Assembly: GCF_006345805.1 (NCBI RefSeq)
Contig: NC_043011.1
Location: forward strand, 64,740,464 to 64,804,463
Direction of reading: 5' to 3'
Length of the DNA: 64,000 bases
Origin: Octopus sinensis
Taxonomy: Eukaryota
Shown: one piece after another, positions 6,399-55,818 of the stretch
Numbering within the stretch: the stretch's first letter is position 1
Layout: every line of letters starts with the position of its first letter
Made by a program: the position numbers and the translations under genes
Notes under the pieces: generated by a model
Database searches by the model: none
Told to the model about the DNA's origin: nothing
What the model saw: only the letters and a program-made list of their open reading frames with translations

Positions 6399-9300
6399 AT
6401 GAAATGTTGTATGTGTATTCTTCTCCTTGTTCGTAAGTAATGTGTAATTTATTTCCTGAAATATTCTATGCGTAACATATATTTTCTTTCCTTCTTTGTC
6501 GCATATATATGTGTGTGTATGTGAGTTTGTGTAAGTTTATACACACACACACACACACACACACACACACACATATATATATATACGATATATACTATAT
6601 ATACGTATGTTATATATTTATGCATATATATATATATATATATATATATATATATATTTATATATATATAATATAAGTGTGTGTGTGTGTGTCTGGGTAT
6701 CTATGTGTCTCTGCATGTGTGTACGGTTGGGCAATATGTATATGTGTTTCTCACAAATACTGTTTTTATCTATGTCTTCAAAAGGCAGAGCTATTTGATT
6801 TTAGTTGCGTTTGCATTTCTCGCGTTCGTTGGATGTCTGGCCTCGTGAATACCACGAACCGATAAAATTTTGGGATGGATCCAGTCCCAGAGAAGAATTC
6901 TGGGTGAGGTTCCCTTATTTTTTCTTATTTTTCAAAATGATGGTGATTGTGAGCATTTTTAGAATTCTCGTTACTGAGAGCATTTGAGTTTATTTCAGAT
7001 ATTCCTATTTTAATTATCATCTCAGGCTAATCATTAAGTGGACGTTGATGTTGTCTTCGTGGAGGATTTCGCTTCCTCATGCTTTTGGTCATATAATAAT
7101 GAATAATCTGGAAAGACAAATTATAATATACGTAATCTATTTCGTTTTTTCCGTTCATAAATACTTAGATGTTTTGTTGCCAATGAAATACGTACGACAT
7201 CGGTCACTGTCATATAGTTACATTTAATGAAAATAATGTATATACATTATCAGTGTATCATAAGTAATATTTTGTAATATATTTATCATAAATCCAACGA
7301 TTTTAATATATGCCAGATAAGATTTCAAAAAGATCTTCTTGTAATACGCGAGAATACTAAATGAAAAATATGATAAAAAATCCGAAAAATAACTGCTTAA
7401 ATCTATCATGCTGGCAACTATGAAAATGCAAATTAAACTTACAAGCTGAATTCAAATAAAATCATTCTTCAATGTTATAACTCTTGGCGCATGTGTGGCT
7501 GTGTGTTAGAGAGGCATGCTCCTCATTAACATGGTATAATGTTGAGAACCACTATGAGCTACCCTGGTTAAGTTTTCTGTATTACATAACCAGACGGATG
7601 AATAAAATTGGAGATGGTGGAACATGAAAGAAACCCATTTTACACATATATGAATATATGTACCTGTGTGCCTTTCTGAGTGAATGGATTCAGCAACCAG
7701 GTTACATTTCGTGCGGTGGTTCCATTGCCTCGTTGTTATGAAGTGTTTCGGAAAATTAACCACATATTATGAGTGCAATTTTGGAAAAATATTTATTGTA
7801 CTAAACCCATGAAATCAATATGAATGTATGACAAATCACGAATGAAATGAGGGAAACGATAAATAATAAATCACTATTGAATAGTTAATGTGTATTTGAA
7901 TTTACAGATGTTGCGATATCAGAGTTTTGCTACGATACAGCCGCGGAATTTTGTGAGGGAGCTATGAAAAAATACCCGGCACAAAAAAGTGACAAATACT
8001 ATTGCAAGTAACTTCACTTTCATTATTATGGTTATTTTTATTAATATTTTTAATAATTGAATTTATAAACGTATAACTTTATCAGAAATGAGAAATACAT
8101 GTTAAATAACCAATGATAGATAACGAACGCATGCGTAATGAAAGTGGAAAACCAAACGACCGACACACAGACACGCTCCCTGGTTCTTCATCAATTGTCA
8201 ACCAAACTCAGTGAAATACTCAGCCTTACCAGAAACGGTGCGAAACCGAGTATTAACATTTTGGTTGATAACTGATGAAATGTTACGGGCGCGCCGCCTG
8301 TGTCTTCCGTCCGGTTCTATGTCTTTATGTCTTTCATACGTCGTTGTTTATTTTCAATGCAGTTTTTCATTTATTAAGTAATAGGACGGCACACACTCCA
8401 TAGTTTCGTGAGATCTTTATATACTTGAATACATATATATATATATATTTAGATATATATAGATATATAGTTATTTGTTCCTACTCGACCCATGCTTAGC
8501 TCATTAGGACTGGTTTCTCGGTTTCCTTGGCGTATAGGTTCCCCACCTGGACGGGACGCCGGTCCGTCGCAGGGTTGCTGCAAGATGCAGGAGGAAAGAC
8601 TGAGAAAAAGTTGTGCAGAAAGTGTCATCAGAACATCGTCATTAGCTTCTTCTGGAACCGCGTGGAGCTTAGGTGTTTCGCGCATAAACACAAACATCGC
8701 TCGGTCTCAGATTCGAACCCGCGATCCCTCAAACGCGACTCCGCTGCTCTAAACACTGTGCTATATTCAGATTTATGTGCGAATCAATAATGCATTTATG
8801 CCGGCAGGCTGGGAACCGTCAAGTGTTTCAGCAAAAAGCTGAGCGACATTTTGTCCGTGTTTACGTTTTGAGAGCATATTCCGCATATTCCAAAATATTT
8901 AATAATTCATTCAGTCTTAGATTCACGTTCAGCAATGTTATTTTTAGAGAGTTTTAGTCCAGACAATTGAATCCGAAATATGCCAGGCAAATTTCCATCG
9001 CGCGTATTTGACCATTAAGAGATCTAATTCCTTGTTCATGAGGCACGAAGCCTGAACTTTTGGAGGAAAGGTTAAGTGGATTTTATCGACTCCTCAGCTC
9101 TATTGATACCTTTTGTTTCGCCAACAGAGGGGCGAAAGGAACAGTTTACCATTGTGTAATTTCAACACAGGACATAAACCAATTATAAAGCTTCTAGGCA
9201 TTTTGTCCAGTGTGCAAACCTTCGGAGAAAAACACATGCATTATTTTAAATTGTAAGTTCTTTAATCCATCTAATTAAAATGAATAAATAATCTGAAAGT

Positions 9301-10166
9301 AAACCAAGCACAACGTTACCATCCAAGTTAAAATATACCGTATAAAAAGTATGATTTTGATATTTGTTATTAAAAGTAAATAAATGCGATGTTATATTAG
9401 ATATGCTCAATAAATATATCGAATAATATTTCTTGAAATGTTATTTTTTTGTCTTAGTCGCATAAAAATGTTCCAGGGTTGTTTTAAAGGAATGTTCAAG
9501 GAGTGTGCTGATTTCTTCTCGAGCACATTTAAGAATAAAAAATGCGGTATGATATTTTCATTACATATTGTAGTTTTGTGAGAAATAACGTTTTAACAGT
9601 TAGAATCGCATACAATAATTGTGTTGCACTGAATTTTCTTAACATATATTCTTGTAAACTTGTATTTTCATTGAATGAGATTAATATCTGCAATGAAAGA
9701 ATTTTAATAAGGTTATAGTTACCATTTAATAATTCTCATTTGGTTAAGCATAACGATAATCACTGTCTATCTTGTGAGTTCACTAATATATCAATTGAAT
9801 GTAATTGCACGTATATATAATGGCATTCGTTACAAAGTTTAATGTGTTAAATCGAATAAATATTTAAAATTTGATTTTAGTTCATTTGCAAATCCTTAAA
9901 AGTTGAGAATATACCCAAATGATGACAGGGAAATTAAAACAATTAATAATCATTCATAATTATGTTTCTTTTTCTTACATGATAGTTTTATTAAGATTTG
10001 TTTGTAAGCCAATAAACATAAATGGTAAAATTGGAGAAGTAACAGATCACCATCTTTTCTTCTTACTCTAGCTTCTGTAATTGCTAGGCAAAAGGCTCCT
10101 CCTTTGCCCCGCCTTGAATTAATACGGATCCTATTACTGCTTCTAATGATACCGGCCTTGTTATGA
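6399..10166 (+). CDS. Paralog A: spliced gene for a 105 aa Cys-rich protein with signal peptide and hydrophobic C-terminal tail (putative GPI/membrane-anchored; family not recognised)
   Basis: Coding exons 6399-6432, 7908-8007, 9458-9546 and 10072-10166 all have GT-AG borders, phases 1/2/1, and total 318 nt. Protein: MKCCMCILLLVHVAIS-EFCYDTAAEFCEGAMKKYPAQKSDKYYCNRIKMFQGCFKGMFKECADFFSSTFKNKKC-ASVIARQKAPPLPRLELIRILLLLLMIPALL*. Same exon structure as paralogs B and C. Confidence 0.9.
8473..8765 (-). mobile_element. tRNA-derived SINE in intron 2 of paralog A
   Basis: Reverse complement has a tRNA-like head (gtttagagcagcggagtcgcg...ggttcgaat, A/B boxes) and a body homologous to 56051-56357. Confidence 0.8.
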
Positions 10167-55300: not shown

Positions 55301-55818
55301 TCTTTACTTATTATAATATTCGCATAAATAGTTAATCAACGATTTGTATTAAATAAATAATTTTGTATTTATCATAACGGATTCGATTTCCCATTGAATG
55401 AGTTTAGTATTTGATGAAAAATGAGAATTTACCAATTTTTGTTAATTACTTAATACATGACATTCAGTTCGACATAACGATAGACACAATGTATCATTCG
55501 ACTACACTGAAATCCATTAATATGTTGTTATGGAGTGATAACCAATTAAAAGTATTCGTTAACTAGTTCAGTTATAAGCAAAACACGTGGGGACATGGAA
55601 GTTAATGTAACAAAGACTACTGTTATGCATTTGGGGTTTGTAGACACAGTTCTTAGAAAGCTTGTAAATGTGTGGAGTAAAAGTCAAAGATTACCTGAAC
55701 ATCATAATTTCTATCTACCCTAGACAAAGAAATTGCAAAGTACAATGCTGTTCCTTCGCCCCGTTTTCAATCACTACGCATCTTAGTATTGGTTGTAACA
55801 ATATCGCTCTTGATGTGA
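52343..55818 (+). CDS. Paralog C: spliced gene for a 107 aa Cys-rich protein with signal peptide and GPI-signal-like tail
   Basis: Exons 52343-52379, 52774-52876, 55201-55289 and 55724-55818 are GT-AG, phases 1/2/1, total 324 nt. Protein: [107 protein letters not shown]. Confidence 0.9.
53833..54063 (+). mobile_element. tRNA-derived SINE (same family as 35563) in intron 2 of paralog C
   Basis: Collinear similarity to 35563-35800. Confidence 0.85.

Follow-up and report, generated by a model that had tools for sequence, protein, structure and literature searches.

The N-terminal domain of the repulsive guidance molecules (RGM proteins: RGMA, RGMB/DRAGON and RGMC/hemojuvelin) is a three-helix bundle with three disulfides, while the RGM_C or partial vWD domain of these proteins carries a GDPH autocatalytic cleavage site and binds neogenin. 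Domains of the GFRalpha type typically contain about ten cysteines and five helices, and the three-finger domain of the Ly6/uPAR proteins is defined by 8-10 cysteines and a C-terminal CCxxxxCN motif. RGMs are glycosylphosphatidylinositol (GPI)-anchored co-receptors, and their binding of BMP2 and GDF5 is a function of the N-terminal domain (PMC7354924). In a stretch of 64,000 nucleotides of Octopus sinensis (contig NC_043011.1, positions 64,740,464 to 64,804,463 of the forward strand; the whole stretch is called the window in the following) three small tandem genes, named A, B and C, for six-cysteine proteins were investigated. We read them as part of an Octopus-restricted, fast-evolving expansion of stand-alone RGM-N-like, GPI-anchored surface modules, with a probability of roughly 60% for this statement as a whole. 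The family is best described as neither wholly unannotated nor an orphan fold; new are its architecture and the lineage-specific expansion of an RGM-N-like domain. A literature search with the LOC identifiers and with octopus in combination with RGM or GPI returned nothing on this family.

The models of A, B and C were rederived from the raw sequence. Each gene is encoded on the plus strand by four coding exons of 34/37/37, 100/100/103, 89 and 95 nt, with the common intron phases 1/2/1. All introns are of the GT..AG type and a pyrimidine-rich tract precedes each acceptor. The products of 105 aa (A), 106 aa (B) and 107 aa (C) are alignable end to end with 40-50% identity and share the cysteine spacing C-x7-C-x16/17-C-x8-C-x7-C-x12-C. 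Thus, the three intact genes described in the first-pass annotation were reproduced in every particular, including exons, phases, splice sites, lengths and cysteine spacing. Hidden Markov models (HMMs), built separately for exon 2 and exon 3 and run on the six-frame translation of the window, detected exactly three copies of each of these domain exons, with E-values of 5e-9 to 1e-14 for exon 2 and 9e-12 to 1e-10 for exon 3; the next matches had E>0.005. That A, B and C form a real gene family is almost certain.

The relationship of the domain to RGM_N (PF06535) became visible at the level of the family. For the window proteins Pfam gave sub-threshold RGM_N matches only, with 13.1 bits (E=0.12) for A and 15.0 bits (E=0.03) for C; no Pfam match, RGM_N included, was obtained for B. 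The curated whole-protein cut-off of 24.2 bits was passed by two paralogues, P0007 with 37.9 bits (four repeats summed) and P0013 with 29.1 bits. Among 49 isolated domains of the family, 25 matched RGM_N at E<=1 (best 2e-4), and every other Pfam family was matched by at most one of them. As control, the non-cysteine residues of each domain were permuted with the cysteines fixed. None of the 49 shuffled domains matched RGM_N; hence neither the spacing of the cysteines nor the composition alone accounts for the signal. A profile of the 49 domains was furthermore compared with 177,635 PDB sequences. Four chains of the RGMB N-domain ranked on top (E 0.03-0.27), and the alignment covers 'D..FCkaLraYagCtqrtskaC', i.e. 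Cys3-Cys4-Cys5 with identical x8/x7 spacing. With a full-length four-sequence profile the PDB search had given spurious weak matches (AKAP13, CD72), and trimming to the domain brought up RGMB. The comparison by hhalign with the N-domains of RGMA and RGMB, whose sequences were checked against PDB 4UHY_C and 4UHZ_B, resulted in P=4.4e-4 and a probability of 34% for 31 columns, again over Cys3-Cys5. These comparisons suggest that the domain is probably a distant homologue of RGM_N. A family without known relatives, as proposed in the first-pass annotation, is thus partly contradicted by the two paralogues over the cut-off, by about half of the isolated domains and by the rank of RGMB in the PDB.

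The same annotation had excluded GFRalpha and GAS1 by the cysteine spacing, which turned out not to be secure. In UniProt the two-domain paralogue P0009 (A0A0L8GPX5) is named 'GDNF/GAS1 domain-containing protein'. The domain could accordingly belong to the GDNF-receptor/GAS1 (GFRalpha-like) superfamily rather than to RGM_N, which would make the octopus proteins GPI-anchored co-receptors of the GFRalpha/GAS1 type in miniature. GFRalpha, GAS1 and GFRAL do resemble them as helical, disulfide-stapled extracellular domains of GPI-anchored co-receptors, whose ligands belong to the TGF-beta superfamily. However, the label was reproduced neither by Pfam nor by the PDB profile. The Pfam family GDNF was not matched at E<=10 by A, B, C, P0009 and nine other scanned paralogues, nor at E<=1 by the 49 isolated domains, and chains of GFRalpha, GFRAL and GAS1 were absent from the PDB matches of the 49-domain profile at E<=10. 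In addition, the octopus domain contains six cysteines and, as predicted, three helices, compared to about ten and five in the GFRalpha type. We regard a GFRalpha-like origin as quite unlikely.

With AlphaFold2 and an alignment of 18 family sequences, an all-helical model of the B orthologue was obtained with a pLDDT (predicted local distance difference test) of 89.7; a run with only three sequences was unusable (pLDDT 47.7). In the model the first mature helix contains Cys1 and Cys2 and the second contains Cys3 and Cys4; the third begins with Cys5. This agrees with the probably helical six-cysteine domain that had been proposed from the letters alone. The octopus domain resembles the RGM N-domain in its number of six cysteines, in their central spacing (C-x8-C-x7-C in both) and in the sequence of the Cys3-Cys5 region ('D..[FY]C..L..Y..C......C'). 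Like the RGM domain it is all-helical, by prediction, with a helix shared by Cys3 and Cys4 and a following helix that begins at Cys5. A signal peptide and a GPI anchor, both predicted for the octopus proteins, are shared with the RGMs as well. At Cys5+4, where Leu103 of RGMB inserts into GDF5/BMP2, the octopus domains have a hydrophobic residue, usually Phe; this is the only conserved contact position. The outer cysteine spacings differ, with x7 / x16 / x12 in the octopus domain and x4 / x22 / x21 in RGMB.

In contrast to the RGMs, the octopus proteins contain no RGM_C or partial vWD domain, no GDPH autocleavage site and no RGD/RGN loop. RGM_C was not matched in Pfam by A, B, C or the scanned paralogues, and the A, B and C proteins stop right after the six-cysteine domain. 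They are not RGMs. The octopus domain occurs alone in a protein of about 106 aa or is repeated up to about nine times, and its genes are arranged in fast-evolving tandem arrays, whereas RGM genes are single conserved developmental genes. Should the link to RGM be wrong, the proteins still constitute a well-defined new six-cysteine helical domain family.

For the search of further members, a profile of the orthologues (P0001-P0003 in place of the spliced window proteins) was compared with 1.84 billion representative proteins. It returned 29 matches; P0015 and P0026 are repetitive artefacts, which leaves 27 family members. All 23 members that were looked up originate from O. bimaculoides, O. vulgaris or O. 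sinensis. The look-up did not include P0005, P0020, P0024 and P0029, of which P0005 maps to the O. bimaculoides locus L001. A word-indexed protein search with the 49-domain profile gave no candidates. The lineage-specific character claimed before is supported at the sensitivity reached, and as far as tested the family appears to be restricted to Octopus.

The signal, domain and tail layout of A, B and C was also found in the single-domain members P0010, P0021, P0022 and P0023. Other members contain the domain in tandem, with two copies in P0009, three in P0008, four in P0007 and about nine in P0004. Most O. bimaculoides loci are on one chromosome, CM046618.1, where the located ones cover at least 49.57-49.91 Mb; the three-domain gene P0008 starts about 4 kb downstream of C. 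In the alignment of the 49 non-redundant domains the six cysteines are invariant at an average column identity of 37%, and a Pro ('YP' motif) and the Arg after Cys3 are nearly invariant (>=90%), giving the motif 'YP...PD..YC.RL'. P0008, a multi-domain paralogue, shares the intron behind Cys3. Taken together, exons 2 and 3 have a length of 189 or 192 nt and are bounded by phase 1 introns on both sides; as a symmetric (1-1) module they can be repeated without a break of the frame, and such repetition would be a simple route to the multi-domain members. The gene of P0008 (LOC128249887; L004, CM046618.1 49.87-49.92 Mb) contains two identical signal-peptide exons at 18243-18281 and 21925-21963 of this locus. 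Because of these two copies, it may be that tandem single-domain genes were joined by read-through in some of the multi-domain RefSeq models.

The A, B and C proteins begin with 16-17 hydrophobic residues ending in AxS. Behind the domain a polar spacer is followed by 12 uncharged hydrophobic residues at the very C-terminus. Hence, the signal-peptide-like N-terminus and the GPI-signal-like C-terminus, both noted in the first-pass annotation, are present in all three. The arrangement of small-residue site, 6-9 residue spacer and 12-residue hydrophobic end without charged tail is compatible with GPI attachment. For B the putative omega region is a textbook site (Q-S|A-A, 9-residue spacer, 12-residue hydrophobic end), and C has N-A-V at the putative omega site. 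An uncharged hydrophobic C-terminus without cytosolic tail, with small residues before it, was observed in 19 of 42 family sequences, A, B and C included. Judged from these features, the A, B and C proteins are rather likely to be GPI-anchored.

Alternatively, the products could be soluble after secretion, for example as pheromones, antimicrobial factors or components of venom or mucus, and their hydrophobic C-terminus would serve for retention or be removed as a propeptide. Such peptides would suit the small size and strongly basic character of the mature domains of A and B (K+R 13-14 vs D+E 5-7). They would also agree with the lack of the hydrophobic tail in several paralogues or annotated isoforms (P0004, P0005, P0011-P0014, P0024) and with the poor omega site of gene A. 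Secreted effector peptides typically evolve fast and are encoded in tandem arrays, too. In contrast, the tail exon of A, B and C has retained its open frame, its length of 95 nt and its hydrophobicity in all three species despite a drifting sequence, a pattern expected of a GPI signal. Moreover, no charged residue follows the 12 residues of the tail, and in the window the alternative exon of C that lacks the tail has a shifted frame. Soluble peptides are therefore considered improbable, and GPI-anchored surface modules are preferred.

The window is about 96% identical to the Octopus vulgaris chromosome OX597831.1 near 17.1 Mb. In O. bimaculoides the orthologues of A, B and C were located in the same order within about 25 kb (CM046618.1, 49.86-49.88 Mb), with exon sizes, phases and splice sites identical to those of the window genes; the same genes, order and exon structure are present in O. 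vulgaris, too. The RefSeq protein P0001 (LOC128249853, 'uncharacterized protein', 106 aa) is the orthologue of B with 76% identity and the same four exons. It equals letter for letter the product of the hand-spliced B gene of O. bimaculoides; an independent annotation pipeline therefore reached the same four exons. P0003 (RefSeq, LOC128249852, 'uncharacterized protein') is the orthologue of A in O. bimaculoides. The description of the family as unrecognised is thus not supported, as its O. bimaculoides members already exist as RefSeq models. The exact products of A, B and C were not found in a collection of 5.8 billion proteins, which fits the first-pass remark that the genes are hidden.

Compared with O. 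vulgaris, 3 of 321 nt differ in B and 5 of 324 nt in C, against about 4% in the surrounding DNA. Towards O. bimaculoides, ratios of non-synonymous to synonymous substitution (dN/dS) of about 0.6-0.9 were calculated at a dS of about 0.2. Such fast evolution fits the possible recognition role (immune, gamete or chemosensory) suggested in the first-pass annotation. The most diverged segment is exon 2 of C (79% identity), despite encoding Cys1-Cys3; the first helix and the loop may thus be under diversifying selection.

Several results weigh against the reading as RGM-N-like, GPI-anchored surface modules. The window proteins themselves stay under the Pfam cut-off or, in the case of B, without match. 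The homology to RGM_N is family-level evidence over about 25-31 aligned columns, at the hhalign probability given above. Of the structural check proposed in the first-pass annotation, the prediction yielded a helical model, but Foldseek found no match in the PDB (best E=2) with the full-length model, which still contained the signal and tail helices; as the model was untrimmed, this null result is uninformative on RGM likeness. The BMP/GDF-contacting residues Arg100, Gly101 and His106 of RGMB are not conserved in the octopus domains, which have variable residues there. At the expected omega site gene A has K-A-P-P, a poor sequence for GPI attachment. Finally, the coding exons are 79-92% identical to those of O. 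bimaculoides (L001), compared to 81-93% for 120 nt of flanking intron, and are thus no better conserved. Since the exons diverge like the flanking introns and dN/dS is high (0.57 for B, 0.94 for C), constraint outside the cysteines is weak.

This divergence and the dN/dS of C would also be expected of decaying or non-functional duplicates, i.e. pseudogenes, or of exon-like noise from gene prediction, and A, B and C were not found among the annotated products of their own genome in the protein collection. Such an explanation is very improbable. All 12 exons have open frames and GT..AG sites in three species, RefSeq models exist for orthologues, and the coding sequence is conserved 3-4 times better than the surrounding DNA relative to O. 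vulgaris. The six cysteines are kept in the three species as well and, together with the nearly invariant Pro and Arg, across paralogues of only 25-50% identity. Rather than pseudogenes, A, B and C are genes that evolve fast on a constrained scaffold.

If the reading as RGM-N-like surface modules is right, A, B and C would be three functional paralogues of an Octopus-restricted tandem gene family. Each gene would consist of four modules: a signal-peptide exon, two half-domain exons for the helical six-cysteine domain of about 57 residues, and an exon for the spacer and the 12-residue tail. With fair confidence it can be predicted that the proteins would enter the secretory pathway, lose the signal peptide after A-x-S, form three disulfides in the domain and exchange the tail for a GPI anchor at a conserved small-residue site (Q-S/N-A-A/P/V). 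A single RGM-N-like binding module would thereby be displayed on the outer leaflet of the cell membrane. Binding of a secreted ligand by this module is speculative. A ligand of the BMP/GDF type (TGF-beta superfamily), as suggested by the homology, can be named only tentatively; a diverged partner specific to the lineage would be equally compatible with the fast evolution and the changes in copy number. The diverged contact residues, together with the rapid evolution, leave room for such a new partner. It is likewise a doubtful idea that the N-module of an RGM-type co-receptor was freed and expanded in octopuses. About 20 or more stand-alone or multi-domain GPI-anchored proteins might then act as a lineage-specific repertoire of co-receptors or decoys, tuning TGF-beta/BMP-type signalling or recognising new ligands in cephalopod-specific tissues.

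Lineage-restricted families of unknown function are numerous in cephalopod genomes, and for very few of them a structural or mechanistic lead exists. The probable relationship to RGM_N provides a family of 'uncharacterised LOC' genes with a testable hypothesis, namely surface binding modules for cystine-knot ligands. If true, the expanded RGM-N repertoire would be a helical counterpart to the vertebrate Ly6/uPAR expansions. Like these, the octopus genes are small multi-exon genes in fast-evolving tandem clusters, and their products have about 100 aa with signal peptide, one cysteine-rich domain and putative GPI signal. The three-finger domains, however, have a beta structure and 8-10 cysteines, compared to six cysteines and a predicted all-helical structure in the octopus domain. 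Neither A, B and C nor the 49 isolated domains matched the Pfam family UPAR_LY6. The likeness is an analogy, not homology.

Table 1. Features of the window; positions refer to the window unless another sequence is named
Feature	Position	Strand	Remarks
Gene A exon 1 (signal peptide)	6399..6432	+	34 nt; ATG, donor GTAAGT
Gene A exon 2 (end of signal peptide, Cys1-Cys3)	7908..8007	+	100 nt; acceptor ttacag, donor GTAACT; exon-2 HMM E=2e-13
Gene A exon 3 (Cys4-Cys6)	9458..9546	+	89 nt; acceptor tcttag, donor GTATGA; exon-3 HMM E=6e-11
Gene A exon 4 (polar spacer, 12-residue hydrophobic tail, stop)	10072..10166	+	95 nt; homology to C exon 4; acceptor ctctag
Gene B exon 1 (signal peptide)	28706..28742	+	37 nt; O. 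vulgaris identity 36/37 nt
Gene B exon 2 (Cys1-Cys3)	31496..31595	+	100 nt; exon-2 HMM E=1e-14; O. vulgaris identity 100/100 nt
Gene B exon 3 (Cys4-Cys6)	35088..35176	+	89 nt; exon-3 HMM E=1e-10
Gene B exon 4	35986..36080	+	95 nt; tail is the most canonical GPI-type signal among A, B and C
Gene C exon 1 (signal peptide)	52343..52379	+	37 nt
Gene C exon 2 (Cys1-Cys3, one extra codon)	52774..52876	+	103 nt; exon-2 HMM E=5e-9
Gene C exon 3 (Cys4-Cys6)	55201..55289	+	89 nt; exon-3 HMM E=9e-12
Gene C exon 4 (spacer, hydrophobic tail, stop)	55724..55818	+	95 nt; identity to O. vulgaris copy C 95/95 nt
Gene C, possible alternative terminal exon	57963..58015	+	tblastn with P0005; acceptor ttcttcttgcag; doubtful coding status
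Segment duplicated in O. vulgaris	51753-64000		matches L002 (OX597831.1) 20479-32944 and 43329-55525
Non-LTR retrotransposon fragment	22001-24119	+	
Non-LTR retrotransposon fragment	29844-30542	-	
Non-LTR retrotransposon fragment	48081-48557	+	
Satellite	47091-47896		181-bp unit, about 4.6 copies, 84-95% matches

The start of the coding sequence of gene A is ambiguous. A second ATG in the same frame, 24 nt before the first, is located at 6375 (MSMIRVTT-MKCC...) behind a stop codon. The N-terminus of P0003, a RefSeq isoform of O. bimaculoides, corresponds to this position (MSMTRVTT-). Translation may thus start at 6375 rather than 6399. For the last exon of gene A, an open reading frame (ORF) from 11685 with a good acceptor (113-aa product) was considered and displaced by the exon with homology to exon 4 of C. 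Two weak exon-2 HMM matches at 16902-16979 and 41182-41340 (E ~0.005-0.008, 11-15 columns) are without exon 3 partner and were taken as chance.

The possible alternative end of C, with homology extending to about 58100, is the counterpart of the last exon of the O. bimaculoides C model P0005, a protein of 123 aa without hydrophobic tail. Its acceptor in the window is good, but an extra A in an A-run shifts the frame, and the conceptual product of 93 aa is likewise without hydrophobic tail. It was rejected as a conserved coding exon; because the reading frame is not conserved, its coding status is doubtful. Possibly, C has here an alternative 3' end under weak constraint that gives a non-anchored isoform.

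The two C genes of O. vulgaris, C and C', go back to a segmental duplication of about 23 kb and differ in 12 of 324 nt, mostly non-synonymously and in exon 2. The window contains one copy of the duplicated segment up to its end at 64000, and a second one may follow behind this point. The O. vulgaris annotation merges C and C' into a 177-aa 'hypothetical protein' (P0002) by reading through the exon 3 donor. In general, short-exon genes escape ORF-based views and get mis-modelled, and this fusion is an example.

Fragments of non-LTR (long terminal repeat) retrotransposons are located between the genes. Their ORFs matched Exo_endo_phos_2 (E=3e-8) and RVT_1 (E=2e-12 and 5e-18), and for the element at 29.7-30.8 kb two further matching places were found in the O. 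vulgaris locus. Such insertions help to explain, in part, that the array of A, B and C covers about 50 kb in the window compared to about 25 kb in O. bimaculoides. The satellite belongs to the most AT-rich part of the window, with a GC content of 26.5% at 44-48 kb, and long (TA)n and (CA)n microsatellites are dispersed across all introns.

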